Origin: Lenisia limosa
Lineage: Eukaryota > Protista > Breviatea
Assembly (NCBI GenBank): GCA_001655205.1
Contig: LPNZ01008715.1
Location: 1 to 49,620, forward strand
Length of the DNA stretch: 49,620 nucleotides
Reading direction: 5' to 3'
Below, in pieces: positions 10,241 to 46,700 of the stretch; position 1 is the first letter of the stretch, and the number at the start of each line of letters is the position of its first letter. The position numbers and the translations under genes were made by a program. The notes beneath the pieces are model-generated. The model was not told the origin of the DNA. It was given only the letters and a program-made list of their open reading frames with translations, and did not search any database.

Positions 10241-13200
10241 ATGGCCTACCCCTTGAGATCTCAGGGTAATGCTCCCGATGTTGACTATCCATCTAAAACG
10301 GACGACGCCTATTGGGGTGAAGAAGACTATGAAGATGATGACGACGATGCTTATTCCCCAAATAGATCTAGACGTGGAAAACGTAACAAAGCTCAGCAGA
10401 GAAGGAAAGGCGACCAGGTTCTCCTCTCCCCTGTCACACCAACGCCTAGTTATAGATCAGGAGAGAAGGTAACTGATGTTTCGGACCATTCCTTGTATGG
10501 ATGTGGAGAGAATTTCTTCAAATTCCCGTAAGTACAACTCTTTTCTCCTTCCAATCTTATTTTTAGGTTCAATATGAAGGTTATCTTCGACCATGTCCAC
10601 GAAATGGAAACAATCAAACTTGTGTCTCGTGAATATGACAATCAGATCTACTTTGATGTCCGTCCTAACAAGCTCATCCCAATCAGACTTGAACTTGAGG
10701 TTGGAAGAGATAGCGCTTGATAAAATATATAATTGTATTAGTGTTGAATGTTGTTCTTATGTTTCTTTCTTCACCTTCGTAGAACCCCCTTCCTCCCATT
10801 CCAGCATCATCCTACTACAGTCTCCGATGCGAGCTTCAAGGAATCACACATCAACTGAAAGTCAGTGTTGGATTTTTTTACGTTTTGTGCTACTTCAACG
10901 CAGTACCCCCCCCCCCTTATTTTTGTTTTGNNNNNNNNNNNNNNNNNNNNNNNNNNNNNNNNNNNNNNNNNNNNNNNNNNNNNNNNCAAAGTCAAGCGTA
11001 TGCCGAAGTGCAAAAAGTGTGAAGGCAGTATTTCACCCATTGCTGTTGGTGAAGGCAAAACCTGGGTCGTTTCCGAGTTCGACAAACTTACCTGCAAGTT
11101 TGTTGGGTTTCAGATGCACCTTCCTGAAAAACGGACCAGCATTACACTAATAGAGGCCTGTTGTATTCCAATCACACGCATACTTTTTTTATAGATTGAG
11201 TACCTGCTTTATTATTATTACAGGTTTTTTTTGGCCCTTGGTCCAGACAACGTTCTACATCAGAAAATTCACCACATGTATTTTTATATCCTTTACAATC
11301 ACTTACAAGCCATGTTCCATTTTTGATATTATTAATTGTATTATTTCAAGCCTCTTGTGTGATTGTAGTGGTTCCAAAGGTTTTCTGTCTCCCACAGCTA
11401 TTTTGTAATTCATTCAAACCTTCGCACGTCCACCTTGTACTGACCATATAGCGTACAATGGACCAACCGCATCGATATTCCCATCAAAGTGGCATGCTGC
11501 ACTGTCCAGCATGACCTAGCGCACTTCCGCATCCTGTTCGTCATCGAGCGCATTGACGAAGGCAGTGATGAGCCTGTCCTGGTAACTCGAATGGCGTGGG
11601 GGGGGGGGGGTAANNNNNNNNNNNNNNNNNNNNNNNNNNNNNNNNNNNNNNNNNNNNNNNNNNNNNNNNNNNNNNNNNNNNNNNNNNNNNNNNNNNNNNN
11701 NNNNNNNNNNNNNNNNNNNNNNNNNNTAGTGGATCCAAGTCCGCTGTGCATTCTCATTATCGTTGCATGCAATCTGATATATTTCAGTATGGCTCCTATT
11801 CTGTCCCGAAAGCGAGCTGGAAAGGCTCCTCAGGCACGACCCCCCGCGTCTCAGAAATCGGTGTGCGGGTGCCTGTATTACTCATTATATCATTTTCCGT
11901 GTGAAACCAATCCTCAAACCTAAGTGTATACCGTCATATCACCTTACGGAAACATGTGGAGATACCAAACAAGTCATTAATAATCCATGTAGACCGCAGT
12001 GGACCGTCGCCGTCCTGCTGTCGAGCATGTTAGACGTATGTTTCGGAAGGGAGGGGGGGGGTACCAATAGCAGCATAGTGTCAACTTGTCGGTTTCACAC
12101 ATGCCACATCTCGTGTCAATATTTAGTGCTTTCCTATTTCAGTGACATTTTCCCATGAAACTGATCTCTTCCAGACAAGTAATTATACATCACCAATATT
12201 TACCCTTGTAGCGGCCCGCAGAAAGCGCAGTCGCAATGCCTATGAAGACATCCCGGATATGCCGGCGGTGATGGCGGTGTCTGATAAGATTTCGCCGTTT
12301 GGGGCCGGGGTACAAGCTGTCACGCAAGGCCAAGGTTTGGCTGGATTATATACATACATTCTTTGGATGTACATGCGATGATAGCGCTCCAACTAGCACA
12401 CCTGAAAACTACATCGATAAATGATTTTAACATATCGTAGTCCTTTGAAGTAACAGGTAGTTTTGGTATTAACATATTTGAGCGGATTTCAAACAGTTAG
12501 AAAGGCAGTCTACATGTACTATAACTTTTTGCGTATCAATATCCCTTACTTTGTACCAAACCTACATCATTATTTGACATGCCATATATTGTATAGTTGA
12601 CTGAAACTTCAAATCGCTCAATCTATGAAATAACAATCAAATACCAGTCTGATGTGGTATAACCAGCATATAGCATATATTATGTGCATGTACTATGAGG
12701 GAAAAAATTCCATATTATTCCATGAAGTAATTAAACTGATGCATTCCGTAAGTGTGATTCACAATTATTCCATCCAGTAGGAGATTGCTTGGAAAAGATT
12801 AAGCCCACAGTGATAAAGGCATTTCTCATAGTGCCAATTAGCCCTCCACTTCTTTCTATTTTACCATTCATTCGCAGATTTACTATTTAGAATTGTGTAA
12901 AAAATGAAAGCCCAACACAATACCATATTTTTGAATNNNNNNNNNNGCGTTTGCGCGGCATATGAAGATATCAGATCATTGCAGGATTTTCCTAAGTAGC
13001 ACGGATGATAATCATGAATTACTCTAATTACTTGAATTTCCATGACCACTTCAGATTTGTCTGAAAGCGTCACTCGTATTGTTGGTGAAACTCTGGGGCC
13101 TGCTCCTACGGGTAGGTTGTAACATTTTTTTTAAGGATCTTACACATTCATGGTCACTTCATAATTTTTTTAAACAATTGGCAGGATATAATATGATTGT

Positions 13201-16200
13201 ATATGTAACTTGTACAGCTGTCGCCCCTGAGCTGATGCAAACGCACAACATCGACATGGCCCTTTCCAATGGCTTTGAACAGATGCCACAACCTGCGCTC
13301 ATGGGTAAGCTGGATGACTACATTTCCTTATACAGCCATTAGCCTAGTTATTCTTCTTCTAAGTATTCAGATTCCCAAACAGGACCAACTCCCTCTAAAG
13401 GTTTGTAATTTGCTTTTTGACTGTTCTTTTATCTTTAACAAAGGGCTTTGTTTTGTTATTTCTTTTTAAAAGTTTAGATGAAATTGCTAGGCATCTCAAA
13501 ACTCTCGACTCCCTTTTCTCCAACAATGTAGGCGCAATTATATTCCCACGTTCTACATACTCTGTATTACCACTGCGTATCCCATTGAATGGGATCACGA
13601 TGACGCACCCACGAACATTACCCTCACCTCACTTGCCTATTCTATTTTAACTTTCAAGACTCCCGTATCTGTCGATGTTTTATGGGGAGCTATTTTCCCC
13701 ATCCTTGCCTGCTACAGCTCCAAAGCATCATCTTACCATAAACTGCTTATGTGTGACATTCTTGGTGGGAGGTTAATATAGTTTTTTTTATATATTATGT
13801 ACATTAAAGTTGACCCCCCCCCCCCTATCTCTATCGTTGCCTGATGTTTTCATTGTTTATTGTTATTAGAAGAGAGCCCCTATTTCAGCATAACGATAAT
13901 TACTCACACTCACTTAGACACGAGCCTCAGCGGAGAAGTTAACATTGAACACTTCCAAGCCTTCCGCAAGTGGTTTGGCGAAACATCTCTTTGGATTGGC
14001 AAGGTTCGAATGGCTATTTTAACTCCTTCCTGAGGGTCTCGCTTATTAAAGTATAATCTGGTCGCCAAATTACATATTACATGTATAGTATGATATTTTA
14101 AAGGAGTTTCTTATTTTGGCATACTGATTGGATAATATTATGTCTCTAATGACGGCATACCTTAATTTAAGGAGTTAACTCTTCAGCTTGAGATTCTGAA
14201 GCCAATCGCGATCCGCAGGTTTGTGTTTGATAAACAGGATGCTGTTTATTTTATTGTTTTTGTAAAGTATTTTGACAATCTGTAAACTGCACTTAGGCTA
14301 AATATTAACTGCTTCGCAACAGAATTACCTAACCCCCTGCTCTATAGTTGGTTCCATGGATTCGTATCGTCACACAGCGCCAAGAGCTGCCTTCTGAACT
14401 CCTCATTAGCCGTCGGTACATTTGTTGTGCGTTTCTCACAGAGCCGGGCAGAGGACAATGGTGTGTTAAAAATAATATGTTTTGGTTGCTGTTTATACCT
14501 CAGAAGTGAACTAAAAATGCCACCTTCTAAGATTTTAGGACTCACGGTTTCAACGGTGTCACTATATCACAATCAAGGTTCGCCTGTCATATTCACTTCT
14601 TGTTTCAAACAAAACAACAAATGGCCCTACTGCTACATGTTGACAATCCCCCACTTATATGTTCCAGTTGTTGTTATTGAGTACCCTGTGCGATTAGATC
14701 TCAATGGGGAGTGCTCAATGTGGGTTGCCTTTACTCGAGACAAGGACACCCCAAAAACTGATGTATGATGGACTTGAGTTTGGCTGTCGCTGCAAGTGTC
14801 TTATTTTTTTTATTTATTTTTTTTTCTTCTTTTTTTTTCGATTTAACTTTTTTTTATTTGCTTTAACTATACATGCTACGGGCGCTAAATCCGATTTAAT
14901 TCGATTATTTTTTATTTTTAATTTCAAACTGCTTTCTCCTTTACACAACAATCAGAAGAAAAAAGTAATTTGTCTCATTTAGAAGTCGAGTAATATACAT
15001 TATATATTCAACTAAACATAACATCAAAATACAAAAATAGAGACAGGATTGTATTACTTTTTGGGCTTCTTTTTAGTCGTGGTCTTGGTGTTCGCTCCTT
15101 CTTTAAGTTGTCGCTTACGGTTTGGCTCCAAGCTGGCTATGTCATCGAAGTTTCAAAAATAACCTAAAATTGTCACCATTGATAAAGTATACAATGTGCT
15201 ACTCCATTTTGAATAAAAAAAGATGGCTTTACATCCCTTCGGCCCGGCCATGGCACCCATTTCTGTGAAGAATCTCTGATTTCGAGCTTTGACTTCCTTC
15301 AAGTTGTCAACTGTAGTGACTACTTTGTCGCTTAGAAGGGTTACTACACGCTCGCCTGGCGAAAGGGGAATGCGAGCCATTGGGGTGATACTTTCTGTAT
15401 TCGGTCCGACTTCTACAACCTTGGTAACAATGTCGAAGATAGCTTAAGATGTAACATTTGTTGAACAGAGGATTGTTGAAGCTCCAAGAACTTTCTTGAG
15501 AGTACTTGGTGAAAATATCATTGCTCAAAAGAGTCGCCATGGAGGCCATACCTTCCAAAAAAGTATTTCTAGCTCCAATATCGTTCTGAACTCGCTCTTT
15601 GGCGAACTGTACAAGTGCGAATTGGAACTGTGTTGAACTGTAGGGTTGCTTCTCATTCAGCTTCGTGCGGAATTTGGCAACTTCTTTTGTCTCAGGTTTA
15701 GGTTTAAACTGGGGGAACGGATCAATGCGGAGTGGGGTCATGAAGGCGGTACCAGGTGGGCTTTCGAGGTTGATGGAATAGAGGCTCTTGAGGAAGGGAG
15801 GTGTGAAAGCTGGTCGTGATAAGCTTCACATACTTTTCTAAGGAATAGATTCCTCTCAGAAACGTTGAGGAAGGTGAGAAACTCGGGCCTTGCTTCCTCC
15901 GTTTCACGTCAAAAGGAACTTGTAAAACTGGATCAGGTCTATTTTCCATCTCAAACAGGGGAAAACCAAAGAAGAAATTTTGTCAAAAAAGCAAAAAGTA
16001 ATTAATGATCACTTTCAGTTGGGCTTGTCTTCTGAAAAAAGCTAATGCTTTGTTAATATTTGAATATTGCACAAAATATAATGAATAAGAACACAATGGG
16101 TCAAAGAGAGAACTTTATTGTTTTAGTGAACAAGATCTTCTTTTTTTTTGTTTTTGGTGAAAGGTAATCTTACTCCAAAATCCCCCTTTTCTATTCTGGC

Positions 16201-16679
16201 TCCCGGGTGTTGAATTTATGCATTTCTACTTCAAATATCAAGGGAGTAAAAGGTCTAAAAATTATAAATTAAAAAATAATCGGATTAAATCGGATTTAGC
16301 GCCCATAGCATATTTATACTTGTTTTAAAAAATATCCCATGGCCTTTCGCTAACTTACATCTAGGTCGTGACAAAAACCTACTCCAGCTTCGACCAACTC
16401 CTTGACACATGTGCAGATGTGTTCNNNNNNNNNNNNNNNNNNNNNNNNNNNNNNNNNNNNNNNNNNNNNNNNNNNNNNNNNNNNNNNNNNNNNNNNNNNN
16501 NNNNNNNTTTGCTTATCTCATTAAATCTTTATTTCGAAATGCTGTGTTCAAGACTTGCAGTTTGGCGCATAAAGGGCAATCACTCACACCGCAGGTATAT
16601 TACCCCCGGAAAGGAGGCCCTCCCCTTAGAGTATGAGTTTCCGACTGGCGTCCAAGCCTTCTCGTCGCACCCTCAATGA
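10241..16679 (+). CDS. CudA-type DNA-binding domain plus linker-SH2 protein (STAT-like transcription factor), more than 20 exons
   Basis: N-terminal acidic then basic stretch (WGEEDYEDDDDDAY; RSRRGKRNKAQQRRKG). CudA-like core: KCKKC...IKVACCTVQHDLAHFRILFVIE...APILSRKRAGK. Pre-SH2 helix: VNIEHFQAFRKWFG. SH2: WFHGFVSSHSAKSCLLNSSLAVGTFVVRFSQSRAEDNGLTVSTV...TYSSFDQLLDTC. Tail: YITPGKEALPLEYEF...HPQ, stop 16677-16679. Four N gaps fall inside the gene. Confidence 0.75.
14879..16305. mobile_element. 1,427-bp TIR DNA element flanked by TA on both sides, inserted in an intron that splits the SH2 domain
   Basis: Left end CGGGCGCTAAATCCGATTTAATTCGATTATTTTTTA (14879-14914) versus reverse complement of right end TGGGCGCTAAATCCGATTTAATCCGATTATTTTTTA: 36 bp with 2 mismatches. 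TA at 14877-14878 and 16306-16307. Host exons resume in frame on either side (..TPKTD | VVTKTYSS..). Confidence 0.85.
15054..15949 (-). CDS. Four-exon gene of unknown function carried by the TIR element; 205 aa, basic NLS-like C-terminus
   Basis: Exons 15949-15883, 15809-15552, 15442-15233 and 15136-15054 with GT-AG introns of 73, 109 and 96 nt join in frame (618 nt). Product: MENRPDPVLQVPFDVKRRKQGPTFTPPFLKSLYSINLESPPGTAFMTPLRIDPFPQFKPK...AIFDIVTKVVEVGP...SSLEPNRKRQLKEGANTKTTTKKKPKK*. The first intron donor is the least certain. Confidence 0.7.
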
Positions 16680-37700: not shown

Positions 37701-40700
37701 CTCCACACTTACCAGTTGGACAAGCCTCACAGACACCATCTGAAGTTCTGTAATACCCAAGGTCACAATTACACGACGACTGGCCAATGTTGAAAGTTGT
37801 CTCGAACATTGCACATGGTTGACAAGGAGCTGAGCTTGTAACTGACTGATGTGTCAAAAATTAGATTGTTGTTTTTGCACAATCTTGAAACATGTTTTCC
37901 CAATTATAGGATAGTTTTATCGCCCACCTTGAAGTAGCCTTCAGAACAGTCCTTGCAGGTGTTGCCAGAAATATCCATTTCAGTTCCTATAAGAGAGATG
38001 AATCATTGTCTACTCTTTGTGAGAAATAAAAGATCTAAAACTGAAACAATACTCACTAAATATATTGACAAAAGAAAAAAATAACAATGTGACCCAAAAC
38101 ACAGAGTTACCTTTAGGGCAAAGACAATTAAGCGTTATGTTGTCAGTGACAAATGGTATCATTCCAGGGTTACAGACGCATGCAGTGCTTTATAGTTACA
38201 AAGGAGATTTATCACGCAGAAAACTTTCATGTTAAGCATTTTAATAAATATATTTGTTGAGACAATGAGTTGCATTTATGGCTAAACCAGCATTTTGCAC
38301 AATATTTTAGATTTACCCACAAAGGTTCTTCAGAGGTCGTTGCGCCAATAGGGCAAGGTTGGCACTCGAACGATGGTAGTGGACTGATTGTGGATTAGTG
38401 ATAGCTATGTAATATGTGGGTCCTCAAAGCTCCGGACAGCATTCAAAATTCACCAGACACATCAAAACTCTCGGACAGCTTGAAGTTGACCCCTTGTATG
38501 GGTCAACAGTAGTGTTTAATACAAAACTGATTCGACAGATAAATAGAAAAAATGACCTCTTAATGTTCCCCAATTGTTTTTTTTTTCAATTTTGAGCAAG
38601 TGTCAAAAATCCGTGAAATTTGGTCTCCCGGGGGTGGCCCCTTTTGCCTTTTCACGGATTTTTTTCTTAATCTATCCCTCTTTTAGTGTTAAGAAACAAA
38701 AAATTGTACCCCCGGAGTAATTGGTTATGGATTTCCTCTTGCTTTGGCTATGTAATGGTGAAATTTGAGAGAAAAATGTTCAAAATAGTGCTTTCTACAG
38801 GGTCAAACTTTCCCGGATAGTTGCCATTTATTCCTTGAATGTGACCAATTAGAACGGTTTTGGTTATTTTTGGCAGTGACTTAATTTGGGTTTGAGCTAA
38901 GAATATGTAAAAACCGCATTCAATCCTGTGATTATGACTGAAATTACTTTCGAAAATAACATGAAAATAAAGTTTATAGTACTTTTATTGGGAAAATTCA
39001 AGCTGTCCGGGAGTTTTGATGTGTCTGGAGATTTTGAATGATGTCCGGAGCTTTGACTATATACATATATACTTTTCATAGAGCTTTGTATTCAAGTCAT
39101 ATACCATAGTATCACAGCAACAACTTTCAATTGGGGTTACAAAGATGTAATATCAAGTGTATTAAATATATAATATGCATGTAGGTAAAATCGTTAAATA
39201 ACACCAAAATTAGGTTTAACTATTAGTCGCAAAGTGAACAATACGTACCTGTAGTATCCATATTGACAAGGTAAACACTTCTCGTCCTGAAGATAGAAAC
39301 CTGCTTTGCATGCACAAATACCGTAATAAAGAACAAACCCTAAAAATGTAACAAAGAGAAAATTATAGAAAAAATAAAATAGTATTCAAACCTTTATTGC
39401 AAACGCAGCTTTCTTCAGCAACAGAAGCTGTTGTGTTTGTTGATGCGTGTTTCCTGCATGGGGTACATACTCCCATGGAAGCTGGTCGAGTATCATTCAA
39501 CTGGGAACCCTCATTATAAGACCCATGGGGGCATGGAGAGCATTGCCGTCCGTTATCGAGATCAACCAGGTAGTACCCAGGGCGGCAGGTGCAGTATCCG
39601 AGCTCCATAGTGTCACTATTATTAATTGTTTCGTTGCATGGTAGCGCAGTTATGTTTTGAGCAATTGAGCTGATTGTGAAATAAACTACTGACTTACTCA
39701 ATACCAAGATGTGGTGATGATAGTCTTAGTTGATAATCAATACCCGGCTTCAGGACCACTTTCAGACCATCAAATAAGACCTTCCCTGTGCGTGCAAAAT
39801 AAGCCTCGTTTCCTACTTGTATGAAAATACTCAATGAAGGTGTAGCATCCGCATTGGTGATACAACAAATATTTCACAAAATCTGGAAATACCTGATATG
39901 GCAGTAGGTTCTGGTGAAATTATCAAATTACATCTAAATTGTAAATAGAACTATGTAGCATTTTATCACAAGGTGAAACAACCAGACCAACTTGAGAGAT
40001 TTCTTTCCAAGTGAATTAGCTCCAACTTCTTTCCCAAAAGCAAGAATCTGACCGGTAATAGCGATTGAGTCACTTATGATGTCTCCTCGTCTTCTGTTGC
40101 TTATTGAATCCCAAAAGTCAGCCGACATCCGAGAGGGAACATTTGAGAGTGCGATCTCAGTGGGTGTCTGTTGGGCCAAGGTAAAAAATGACAATTTCCA
40201 TGTGCTAGAGTAAAATCTCCTTGAGATTGAATGCTAAGATACATTATTTTCCGTCTGCGATTGTTGCATCTTTATCAAAATAATCTCTGAAATGATAATG
40301 AATCACCATAAAAGTTCATAGAATATTATCTCTTTTCCCTCCCACCGCCTCCACAGTTAATGTTGTTGAAGATGCGGTTACAGTAATCCCATTGACAGAT
40401 ACTAAAGTTGAATTATTACGTGAAATACCAAATAATCTTCAAAACTAATATTATTTGTATATTTATACAAATATCAAAATATCAAATCAAAATTAACAAT
40501 TATGCTCTTTAGTTTATAGCATACTATCTAGAAGCAAGACCCCCCATTCAATGCAAATTGCTGGTGAGGGTAATGGGCAATACATAGTGAAAGGACTTGA
40601 TACCGAAGGTTCAGATTCGAATACTTCATCTACACAATTACAAATGCAAGTTCAATAAACGAAACAAAAGGTAAAGTCATTTTAGTTGACATTAGCATAC

Positions 40701-43700
40701 CATCTAACGATGACCATCTGCACTTTCCACCGTCAACATCTATATTGTGTCCAATCTATCTCATTGAGTAGGTAACATTTGCGCTTATGGTGAAACATGT
40801 CGATTATATTGTGATACTATTTACTAAAGGAGTCAATTCAAAGCGGTCCACCTTGAAAACATACAAATATCGATCTCATATGTATTAAATACAGTGTGAA
40901 ACAAATTTAGACAATATCACCTGATAATAAAAAAACGGTTATATTTAAAGTGTCAATCCGGAAAAGCCATTTACCAGGAAGACGGAAGAATCTGAAGCTA
41001 AAAGTGTTGACAGTTCAGCTTTTCCTAATAGGTCATCCTTAAAAGTAATATTTTTACCTTACCATTAGACTGAAGCACTTGGGGAACAATTACGTTGATT
41101 GAAGGGCTGGGTAATACGACAATTGGCGGCATTGAGGGTGCAACAAGTGATGCCGTATAGCCATTGAGAAGAATAACAGGGTGAATGAACGATGCCTCTG
41201 TCCATCCAGGGTTTTTGCCGGTAAAGTTACAGGTCTTAGTCAAAGGTTCACAATAGCCCTGGAATGATAATATTGATGTTATTATTTGTCCTCAACAGCT
41301 TGATAAATGGTGAATAGCAACTTAATATAATAACTTACAATTGCAGTTACAATAAGTCCAGAAGACTTTTGGAAACTAGTAGGAATCACCTCTCTTAGTC
41401 TACAATGTTAGATGTGGTAATAAAACTCAAAATGATTGTATAACTATATTGAAATTGTATTTATTGGAGAAGGCAGTGTTGTCAATTTAGCATACTCAAA
41501 AACAGATTCAGATTTTGTGTCCACTGCTATGTCAAAGTTACAAGTGACATTCAATGTGTCTTGAGAGGAATACAGGCCGTTGCTGCTGCAGTAAAGTAGC
41601 ATTGGATTTCGGTATATTTGAAGTTCCAATGTTAAGTTCTAAAGATGTAAATTGAAATCTGGTTATTCAATAGCCCACAAAATATGTCAATCCAATGTCA
41701 TAAAGTCCCGAATTTATCTGAGGTACATTGAATTGAATCATTGAATCGGAAAGACCAATTAAGGGTAATCTGATGATTGTACCATCCTTTCCATAAAGAA
41801 ACACTTTTTCACTGCCTGGGTTACATATCGCAGGAATTTGACCAGATATCGTCACTAAGCCGCCTGTTGAATCTGCTAACATTGGAGGGTCTATTAAAAC
41901 GCCTTCAATGACGTTGAGGGAACAGCTCAGTCTGGTAATAGCGATCATAATAGAGTCATTATCAGGTAGCATTGCAGGAGGTCCAAAATCTGTCAATAGA
42001 ATCTCATATTTGCTGTGTGATGCTAGAAAATAATTTGTTCGCTCATCATCAAGAACAGCCTGCAAAGTTTGATCATGCTCAGGCTTCAATACTCCCCTTA
42101 TGAATTCAGTTGAATTGAAATGAGAGATTTGGAATTCTCTTTCATTAGGAGAACTCGGTGTAATAATCTGAAATATTAATGATAGAAGAGAAGCCACCAA
42201 CAATTATTGAACACTGCAAGTTGTCAAATACCATTTTTGAAGGAAATTCGATTATAACATCATTTTGAATCACAACAGTTGCACCACACTAATAGTAGTG
42301 AAAACAAGTGAAACAATCTAAAAACTGGCAGATACTACAATTGCAAAGAAAGATTAAGTATTTTACAAAAAAATAATATCAAAGGATACACATTGAAGAC
42401 ATACAATATCACATCGGTCTCCAATCCATCCATCAAAACAGTTACATTTGTATGGCGCCACGCATTCTCCATACCTGTTTTGATTAACAAAATTGCTTGT
42501 GTTGTTTTTGTATATCATATTTAATACCGTGAAATTATTGCTCATATTAAGAGTACATGTAGTATATTATATGATTTAGAGTATACTATATGATATGCAA
42601 GTATGTATATTATATCATATCAAAGTATTCAATTAGTTGAACTAATTCTCCTTGAAAACAAATATAACTTCCGTTTTGCCGATAGATAGCCCAACTAACT
42701 CGCATCCCTCAGGGCACATTGTTTCGGAACAAAGTGTATTAGTTGATCCAGGGAGACATTCACAACCTCCTTTGCTGCCACACTCCATCCCCTGTAATTA
42801 TTAACATAAATATATTCCTGAATCGACAAAGAAATGATAACAGCGGGTAAAACGGAGTGGCAGTTATAATAACATAAACATTTAATCCACCAATAACTGT
42901 TTCCTAGGAAAATCACAATTTCAAAATCCAATCTAACTTGAGGGCAATTATGCTGGCCAGACGTAAAGCACATGCCTTCAGTTCCTGGAACGATGTCTAC
43001 AAGATCGCTGCATGCTACGTCTTTCACACATGCAGCTGATTGACACCATCCCGATGAATGCGATGGAGACTCCTTTGATTTGATTAGAATGTGAATGATA
43101 GTGACGATGCAATAAAATCATGTAATATTTTGGCAGTACAAAACATTCTAAATATAATTATCAAATTTCAAGATTGAATTTCAAAACGAGGAATATGGTT
43201 GAATAGATTGACCCAGAAACAGCATTCATAGTACCATGCAAGTGACTGCTGCTGCATCAGCACACTTCCCGTCAATACAGAAAGAGTCCTGGAACCTAAA
43301 ACCAATGTTAAGAAAATAATTTCATGAAATTGACTTTGTTGAAAGGCAGTAGTATATGGCAATTGATAGTTTCTGACAAGTGACATTAAAGCAGTCCACT
43401 AACCCTTGGTGCACCATGCAGTTCGCTTCCAAAATCATCTCAGAAGAGCCAGAAATAGGATTTCCTATGCTATCCACCCATCCAAAATTCACGTTACTGC
43501 AGTCTTTCTGGAGGCATTTTGATGGAGTGGCATTAGGTAATGCAATGCAGCTGCCATTTGAACTACACGTATGGCATGTTGATGAGCAAGGTTCACGGCA
43601 ACAATGACCGTCCAAACAGATGAACTCCCCACAATCCGAATCAAGTACACATGATGTGGGAAGACAGGAGTCATAATCATCCAAGATGAATTTACCATTA

Positions 43701-46700
43701 ACACATATGCTAACACCGAGGCTGCTACTGTACCTGCCATATTGACATTGGTTTTGACAAATTGTTGCGTTACGAATCCTCCCGTCAGTTAGAACACTAG
43801 AAACTGAACAAATTGGAATTGGATCCGTCTTATCATAGTTAACAATTTTACAAGGTGGAGGGCTGCAAGTTCGATCTACTGGGATAGTAGCCCAGCCTTC
43901 AGGAGTACATTTCCATGCTGTTTCAATAACTGGGTCATCATCTAACAGATCAATAAGACCATCTTTGCAAGCTGTTCGACAAATGTCAGAGTTGTTATAA
44001 CCAATGCAGTCAACTTGCTCAAGTAGTGTACTGTCATAAATGGGGTTTTCAGAACAGGTGTGTATAATGCACATGTTTGAAAAGAGGTTCAGTGTACCAT
44101 TAGCTTCACAGGTAACCTGAGTATCACCAATTAAAACAAATCCATAATTACAGCTGAAATCACATTTGTCACCATATTTGTGACCACTATAGCAGTTGAT
44201 TTTCATTTCGGGATCTATTAAAGCAATGCCAGGATTGCATGCTACTCTGTCATACTCAATTGCTGAGATGTTGAATGGACATGTGATATGGTCAAGTGTA
44301 TCATTTGAGGTATATCCCAATTTTGGTGCTAAATTACAGTACTCATTGTTAAAACAATCGCCTGTAATCCAGTCAGGAAATACAGAAGGACACCCAGTGT
44401 ACAGGCATTTTTCCTGACTCGCGTCAATTTTTCTTGATTCTTTCAAGCAATATAAGGCGGAAATAGATGGCTCGTAACTGCCCGGACAAATCAGATCACA
44501 TTTATTTCCAACAGCCATTACCACGTCACAATTGAAATCCATTCCTTCAGGTAAAGTGGAGTGAATCACCTCACAAGTAATTAATGAGCATGTTGGATAA
44601 ATGGGCAAGATTTTAAATGCATCACAGGTGTAATTTTGTATCGATGGCTCATAAGATGGATCACAATCAGGTTGAAACACTGCTTTGTCTAAGACTGTTA
44701 CGTTTTTGTGATGTGTTCCATTAAAATACTCAAAGGAACAATAGTGTTGGCATTGCGGTATATCACTAAAAGTCTCATCTGAACGACATACCACAGGCTC
44801 ATGAGAAGTTAAAATAGTTCCGTTGTGACACTCTACGTTGAGGGTTTCCCCGTACATAAGATGGCTTTTATCTGTATACGTTTGAAGAATCCCATCAACT
44901 GATGTGACACTTGGGGGGACAGGACACCACACGGCCACACAATTATTATTAACTTCTAGTTCCCTGTTGAGGTTGCAGTATGCATTCGGCGGGCTAATAC
45001 CGTTGTAATATCCCGGCTCGCATGTGAAGTCAGCTGATTCTCCTTTCAAGATCGTAATTGAGTCACCAACTATACCCAATGTTGGAGTGTATAAACATGC
45101 CTGAGGACGACAATAAAGATCTTCAATAGGCCCACTCCAATGCCCGTCAACACACATCGTGTTTAGAAGTAATGGCATTCCGATGGTAGAGTAATTACCT
45201 GTAGAAGGGCCAAGAGAGGAGTTACTACAGGTGATATCAATGGTTTCACCTTCTAAGTAGCCAGTTAATTCAAGACTGGTTAACAAGCCATCAGCGTGGA
45301 AGTCAGGATGGTAACATGAAATAGAGTGACACTGAAGAAGGGGGCCATCAACAAACAGCCCATTGCTTACATTGCAAAAGTAGTAGGAAGATATGAAACC
45401 TACTACCCAGTCTTCAAGGGAGACTCGAGTAGTATTGCTGCATTGTACGTTCACTCCCTCAGTGTCAAAAGCGAATGTGTAATCAGATTCATCGTAGTCA
45501 GTTGGGGTGCCGCAGTCGATGTTACAATTGAATGCGTCCAGAAATTGTCCATTCTTGTCGCATAATATAGTGGTGTTATATGTCGTAATATTTGAGTTTG
45601 AGCAGTAAACGTCATACTGGAACCCATCAAGAACCTTAATTGTGATTGCAAAAGGTTTTCACTGTTACATATACTAGTTATCATTTTGTAATAAAACATA
45701 ACGTATTTATTTCATTAATATTTAAAAAATGCTAGAAGACAGAAAGAATCATATACTGTGCAAACTGCAAAATTAGCTATTATTACAATACTCATGTATA
45801 TACACTAACCAGGTCATTGATAGAACTGTCATGGCTTGTAAAGTGCATGAATTGTGGAGCTGCATCGCAAACTCTGACACATCTTCCAGTGGGTTCTGTT
45901 TACGTTAGCATACAGTCTAATACTAAAAAGCCCATAATAATGCCACTTTTGTTCAGATTCATATGTCTCCAAAATGGGAAAATATAACAGGTAGATTAAC
46001 AAAACATACCTGAGTAATGAGGTCCAATACACTCTGATATGATTGGAGCGTTCATTGGAAAGGCCAAGTAACCTTGGAAGATAAGACCAAACTATCAATT
46101 CAACAAATTACCTTCGTCACACTGATAGATCACATTGTCTCCAACACTTGATGTTCCGGTATATGTCGAATTGTGCATTTCTGGTGGGGCTCCTCTGCAG
46201 TCAGGATCTGTAAAAATGAGAAATAATTACCATAATTTTGATTGAATATTTCCTCTCAGTACTGTCAAAATCACAATATAATGGTAAAATAAACTAAGGA
46301 TATAATATTTTGATTTGTGAGTCCATCATATTTTACCATGATTCGGGTGAATTTGTTTAAAAATTAACAATTAACTGCTTAATTCCCAAGTTACCATAAT
46401 GTGCCAGGAAAATGTCACTCAAGTAAACATCAGCAGTAGTACAGTTTGTAAACCTCAGTCCAATGCTATACAAGACTATGCTCTCGGTTAATTGGTCATG
46501 GCCGCATTTGAAGAATGCATTTGATCGTGTGTATTGGGTTGCTTCTTCACTTAAAATGGTTTGATAGTTCATCAAATTGTACATTTCTGTGATAACTTCT
46601 TCACACATGGGCACTATTGCTACTGAGCACATCGGATCAGCGATTACCTACAAGGAAAATTGTGTTTTAAATAATCACTTTACAGTTTAGAATTCATTTA

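Follow-up and report, generated by a model that had tools for sequence, protein, structure and literature searches.

A spliced Lenisia limosa gene that joins a conserved Cys/His domain to an SH2 domain in a STAT-like layout

The window analysed here is a stretch of 49,620 nucleotides (nt) from the breviate Lenisia limosa (assembly GCA_001655205.1, contig LPNZ01008715.1, positions 1 to 49,620). On its forward strand, between 10241 and 16679, one spliced and expressed gene joins a conserved front domain containing Cys and His residues to an SH2 domain, which is followed by an end with two tyrosines. We read the 617-residue product as a signalling protein with a STAT-like layout, a latent DNA binder that would be switched by phosphotyrosine, and we put this reading just short of an even chance. 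The STAT-like layout is supported; sequence membership of the STAT or CudA families is not demonstrable.

STATs occur in animals and their unicellular relatives as well as in Amoebozoa, and plants have an odd STAT-like protein. The domain order of plant STATL, a CudA-like region plus an SH2 domain, is said to have been given by Yamada et al. in 2008. How the DNA-binding and SH2 parts first joined is unsettled. The breviate branch lies between Amoebozoa and the animal-fungal lineage. The Lenisia limosa gene provides a concrete protein for asking whether SH2-coupled transcription control goes back further than the STAT family and takes more forms, whether the CudA/STATL type is present in the breviate part of the tree, and which kinases act in organisms that lack the classical tyrosine kinases. 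Should the front domain prove not to bind DNA, the protein is simply a new SH2 adaptor.

The gene model has 20 exons, all on the forward strand. When it is translated by script, the frame stays open across all 19 junctions and ends at a stop codon at 16677-16679. The RNA evidence comes from a public polyA metatranscriptome run (2016), which belongs to the same study as a small DNA run. A single spliced RNA contig of 1593 nt spans the region from the inside of exon 2 (~10579) to past the stop. It aligns in many pieces over 10640-16639 with GT..AG introns between them. Along this contig 18 GT..AG introns are removed; 13 of the joints are listed by the alignment, and the other 5 were set by contig arithmetic and unique AG/GT candidates. 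The donor of the last join lies inside a gap of N. In the intron bins 11240-11439 and 14840-16239 the DNA run has coverage and the RNA depth is zero, implying that the RNA contig is processed mRNA and not contaminating DNA. Nor is the gene a product of chance, because its frame is open through all the junctions and its product shares 50% identity with an independent homologue over 181 columns. The first-pass annotation of this locus, made from the sequence alone, had considered that cDNA might place the exons of the two domains in separate genes. They are found in one mRNA and in one open reading frame (ORF).

Such a fusion could also be an artefact in which two neighbouring genes were brought together, either by chimerism of the RNA contig or by a join made over gaps in the assembly. 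The locus has four N gaps, and Logan contigs may join adjacent genes. However, 18 GT..AG intron removals on one contig, a single 617-codon frame with no stop between the parts, and DNA contigs bridging three of the four gaps make this explanation extremely improbable. The annotation had also called for the gaps to be closed, and with RNA and DNA contigs the frame is continuous across all four. They are intronic apart from 5 nt and 17 nt, both of which are filled by the RNA contig. The gap at 10931-10986 corresponds to intron 3 and the first 5 nt of exon 4 (CTTTG in the RNA), and its true size is 32 nt vs 56 N. The second gap, at 11614-11726, is entirely within intron 5 (45 nt vs 113 N), and the third, at 12937-12946, is within the 720-nt intron 8. 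The last gap, at 16425-16507, takes in the final 17 nt of exon 19 and the beginning of the intron that follows (84 nt vs 83 N). Of these 17 nt, the RNA supplies 15, found between 16424 and 16593, together with an AG that also fits 16593-16594. The true sizes are taken from the bridging Logan DNA contigs, which also have one extra G after 12052, in an intron.

Mapping on the spliced model places every motif quoted in the annotation in an exon, in the same frame and on the same transcript. These are KCKKC (11006-11020, residues 175-179), KVACCTVQHD (11486-11515, residues 217-226), ILSRKR (11798-11815, residues 257-262), FQAFRKWFG (13953-13979, residues 455-463), GTFVVRFS (14415-14438, residues 505-512), YITP (16596-16607, residues 591-594), and YEFP (16632-16643, residues 603-606). 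Some of the sequence that had been read around them is intron. Exon 4 stops at 11097, and the residues read after KLTC (FVGFQMHLPEKR..., FVGFQMH) are not translated. Likewise, the GGGG run before the second gap lies past the end of exon 5 at 11595. HSHRR, which had been read just before YITP, is also intronic; the last exon begins at 16595 and the actual context is NFGLKR-YITP.

Exon 1 (10241-10527, residues 1-96) contains the start codon and encodes both an acidic stretch and a basic cluster, RRGKR, which from its composition is likely a nuclear localisation signal (NLS). The exon is of low complexity and lies outside the coverage of the RNA contig. It is supported by a GTAAGT donor and by a 39-nt intron which restores the frame with fitting phase. 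A homologous contig (L001) has a 58-codon ORF ending in ...NFYGNNPNYFQLP, followed by a GTAAGT intron, after which the conserved domain begins. This intron matches intron 1 of the Lenisia limosa gene in place and phase. An upstream neighbour gene is located on the opposite strand within ~300 nt, so there is little space for an alternative first exon.

The conserved front domain (residues 98-272) is encoded by exons 2 to 6. Exon 2 (10567-10699) holds the start of this beta-rich domain (FDHVHEMETIK...YFDVRPNKLIPI) and ends at the RNA joint 10699/10783. Exon 3 (10783-10860) is set by RNA joints and splice sites. Exon 4 (10987-11097), whose first 5 nt fall within an N gap and come from the RNA joint, carries a CxxC (C176, C179). 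Exon 5 (11452-11595, RNA joints) encodes the domain core KVACCTVQHDLAHFRILFVIERI with C220, C221, H225, and H229. Exon 6 (11788-11860, RNA) encodes APILSRKRAGKAPQA, a basic motif at the end of the conserved domain.

Exon 5 was searched by phmmer against 1.84 billion cluster representatives, and this query of 47 residues, a weak one, gave two matches. One of them, P0002 (E 3.5e-5), is a protein of 331 residues from a Logan contig of a different, independent run. The other and top match, P0001, is a 1043-residue tandem-repeat protein whose match is confined to a 14-residue stretch, hit five times, and was taken for a low-complexity artefact. In a pairwise alignment, P0002 and residues 98-272 of the Lenisia limosa protein share 50% identity, with 91 of the 181 columns identical and 129 positive; exon 2 is 68% and exon 6 is 71% identical. 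H105, H107, H163, C176, C179, C220, C221, H225, and H229 are all kept in P0002. Thus the CxxC to which the annotation had pointed, the CC, and the two later His residues are conserved features. Eight of these residues (H105, H107, C176, C179, C220, C221, H225, and H229) could serve as metal ligands. The domain, of which P0002 and the Lenisia limosa protein are the two known members, is probably all-beta and about 175 residues long. Past the shared APILSRKRAGKAPQA motif, P0002 continues with ~150 residues of acidic/basic low complexity up to the end of its contig.

What kind of domain this is was addressed by several searches. P0002 matches no Pfam family at E values of 1 or below, in a Pfam copy that may not include the PF28397 model, and no PDB sequence at E up to 10; neither search placed it with the STAT_bind-type DNA-binding domain. 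The PDB search with exon 5 gave nothing relevant. A word search with P0002 returned only itself within a length window of 182-579 residues, which excludes full-length CudA and STATL, and a metagenome contig scan with P0002 found no relatives. Judged by protein-language-model features of its first 180 residues, P0002 has its nearest neighbours in Atlas clusters annotated with PF28397 (DG1062_N), with similarities of 0.92, 0.90, and 0.89, a level (at least 0.9) that is also reached by 4-10 of 100 shuffled proteins. PF28397 is found on 8 of the 30 nearest clusters listed, with haptophytes and oomycetes as the taxa on record. Apart from it, the named families in these 30 clusters are limited to the DNA-binding domains of LAG1/CSL (0.84), p53 (0.78), and SPT23/MGA2 (0.76). 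The named neighbours are thus beta-sandwich DNA binders. This is the sole positive sign for DNA binding and serves as a lead only.

The language-model result also bears on a different origin of the front domain. The gene may be a true member of the CudA/plant STATL group, with a front domain homologous to the 120-residue CudA/ECudA core, which contains two DNA-binding motifs, and would then be the breviate counterpart of STATL. Its domain order is the same as that of plant STATL (PMC8331091), and the feature matches lead to PF28397, an eukaryote-wide family. On the other hand, the exon-5 search of the 1.84 billion representatives, with its short query, found no CudA or plant protein. Any link between PF28397 and CudA is conjectural; in the literature, DG1062 was found only as an instrument name. 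Moreover, the first half of the SH2 domain is nearer to classical than to STAT-type SH2 domains. We therefore regard such membership as possible but somewhat doubtful.

Between the two domains, exons 7-12 (11993-12035, 12212-12334, 13055-13111, 13218-13304, 13371-13400, and 13478-13527; RNA joints, frame, and composition) encode a Pro/Arg/Ser-rich region that is probably disordered. It has a second basic cluster, RRKR (residues 294-297). By composition, the protein has three NLS-like clusters (RRGKR, SRKRAGK, and RRKR). Exons 13-15 (13659-13764, 13918-14003, and 14187-14218; RNA joints and contig arithmetic) encode the pre-SH2 region including FQAFRKWFG. Exon-level PDB searches with exons 13 and 14 found no STAT or other relevant match. 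In exon-level Pfam scans, SH2 is the only family matched, and neither STAT_alpha nor Dict-STAT-coil was found.

The SH2 domain begins in exon 16 (14348-14460; WFHGFVSS...GTFVVRFSQS). This exon matches positions 1-33 of the 77 in the Pfam SH2 profile (PF00017) with E 7.4e-5 and 23.2 bits, above the cut-off of 21, and the betaB Arg is R510 in GTFVVRFS. The SH2 domain with an intact betaB Arg that the annotation had reported is therefore borne out. The best PDB match of exon 16 is the C-terminal SH2 domain of SHP-2 (E 0.002), followed by GRAP2, NCK2, ABL, GRB7/10/14, SRC, and SYK; there is no STAT among the 60 PDB matches listed. The first half of the domain looks like classical SH2 domains and not specifically like those of STATs. 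The RFSxS pattern in GTFVVRFSQS is STAT-like, while the opening WFHG is of the classical type. A word search with the SH2 exon gave no candidates. The C-terminal half is spread over exons encoding 13, 31, and 26 residues, each too short to score. Exons 17 and 18 (14539-14577 and 14668-14762; contig arithmetic, unique AG/GT candidates, and frame) encode the middle of the domain. Exon 19 (16365-16424 and the 17 nt in the N gap; RNA contig) encodes the region of its C-terminal helix (SFDQLLDTCADVF).

Exon 20 (16595-16679; RNA joint and frame) encodes the 27-residue end with Y591 (YITP) and Y603 (YEFP). Both tyrosines follow the SH2 domain in frame as the annotation had said, but YITP is probably part of the last SH2 strand and not of the tail, as had been assumed. 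This placement comes from aligning the end of the domain by eye with the Src SH2 pattern, GL-x-x-R-L-x-x-x-P. Y603, in LEYEFP, is located 15 residues before the C-terminus. With Y591 in an SH2 strand, Y603 is the more credible candidate for a free phosphosite.

Similar arrangements are known in other eukaryotes. Plant STATL (AtSHA/AtSHB) has a DNA-binding-like region before a single SH2 domain and its phosphotyrosine function is doubtful (PMC8331091). Judged by description only, the Lenisia limosa protein resembles it in having a putative DNA-binding region upstream of a single SH2 domain, in lacking the usual STAT coiled coil, and in a host without classical tyrosine kinases (PMC8331091). It differs in that the tyrosine sites of plant STATL are said to be poorly conserved and its SH2 domain to be a proto, STAT-type one (PMC8331091), whereas here the SH2 domain opens with the classical WFHG and is followed by two tyrosines. 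Since the plant architecture is already described (PMC8331091), the 'CudA-STAT intermediate' of the first-pass annotation is neither shown nor in itself a new architecture. The CudA proteins of Amoebozoa are nuclear factors that have a conserved core of ~120-174 residues and no other recognisable domain (PMC5923282, PMC8808424). By description they compare with the Lenisia limosa protein in having a conserved core of unclassified type, and they differ from it in having no SH2 domain.

The STATs of Dictyostelium and Acanthamoeba share with the Lenisia limosa protein a betaB strand of the GTFxxRFSxS type, a C-terminal tyrosine, and a host without JAK and Src. They have, however, a coiled coil, a DNA-binding domain recognisable by Pfam, and an EF-hand linker (PMC4206453), and none of these is detected here. 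STAT membership fails on the coiled coil and on STAT_bind. It is reported in a survey of breviates including Lenisia that they have no FAK or c-Src (bioRxiv 10.1101/2020.04.29.069435). STATc of Dictyostelium is activated via tyrosine-kinase-like (TKL) kinases (PMC4196871). Dictyostelium STATs are thus activated without FAK/Src-type kinases and provide a precedent for a phosphotyrosine switch without classical tyrosine kinases.

By analogy, the mechanism in Lenisia limosa may be as follows. The conserved front domain would bind DNA as a beta-sandwich stabilised by metal. The protein would stay latent until phosphorylated by a candidate dual-specificity (TKL-type) kinase, on Y603 or, with lower likelihood, on Y591. 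Two such molecules would then dimerise by reciprocal SH2-phosphotyrosine binding and act in the nucleus, as in Dictyostelium STATs.

Several points weigh against this latent, phosphotyrosine-switched DNA binder. It has no STAT four-helix coiled coil; the stretch before the beta domain amounts to just 96 residues of low complexity. The front domain has no Pfam, PDB, or profile evidence of a DNA-binding fold. AlphaFold, run on P0002:1-185 with no alignment, returned a model made only of strands, which speaks for the reading, but with its predicted local distance difference test (pLDDT) score of 42 the model is unusable, and the Atlas fold search with it returned unrelated sandwiches with template modelling (TM) scores of 0.36 or less, which is noise. 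(A MAFFT alignment of P0002 with the exon translations misplaces fragments and was left out of folding.) P0002 has the domain and no SH2 in view on its 1.8-kb contig, so that the pairing of the two domains is seen only once. In the SH2 domain itself, the alphaA2 basic residue of the pocket appears to be replaced by Ser, and Y591, the first of the two tyrosines, is probably inside the domain.

Some of the same evidence suits a cytoplasmic SH2 adaptor, whose beta domain would bind proteins or lipids and whose basic clusters would be incidental. P0002 has no DNA-binding family match in Pfam or PDB, the nearest SH2 domains are those of adaptors and a phosphatase, and the fold search with the poor model gave only generic beta-sandwiches. 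However, the named language-model neighbours are all DNA-binding domains, and the protein has three NLS-like clusters; on this evidence an adaptor is unlikely. Another explanation is that the switch is convergent. A lineage-restricted, zinc-stabilised, p53-like DNA-binding domain may have become joined, in an independent event, to a classical (Src-type) SH2 domain with a tail tyrosine. The p53 DNA-binding domain is also beta-rich, with Cys/His pairs ~40 residues apart that would correspond to a possible zinc site, and its cluster is among the language-model neighbours. It differs in that there is no sequence match, and zinc binding here is purely what we infer. We consider convergence distinctly improbable. 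If true, it would be a second invention of phosphotyrosine-driven dimerisation of a transcription factor, in an organism without classical tyrosine kinases.

Besides the coding sequence, some introns of the gene have features of their own. Intron 18 (14763-16364; 1602 nt), located between exons 18 and 19, contains a pair of 51-nt inverted repeats (14868-14918 and 16266-16316) which are 90% complementary and surround ~1.35 kb. No contig of the RNA run covers this stretch, and its DNA depth is higher and uneven, as in repeats. An antisense ORF of 144 codons (15307-15741, reverse strand) in the same intron has no Pfam match. In intron 8, a second RNA contig (12377-12876) of very low depth is unspliced and on either side passes into sequence that does not match; pre-mRNA, carried-over DNA, or a repeat could each account for it. 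The homologous contig L001 (327-640) keeps intron 1 and has no introns through the conserved domain, compared with five in the Lenisia limosa gene. Either the intron density is strongly different or that contig is a partly spliced RNA.

The window as a whole is eukaryotic and intron-rich with 33-44% G+C, and has no Rfam matches at gathering score. Far downstream of the gene, on the reverse strand, a cysteine-rich ORF of 710 codons (43322-45454) matches the Sushi repeat (E 1.6e-4). Another ORF on the reverse strand (39363-39707) has weak, sub-cut-off matches to ephrin-receptor-like, TNFR-like, and cEGF domains. These two ORFs are probably exons of one large extracellular protein.

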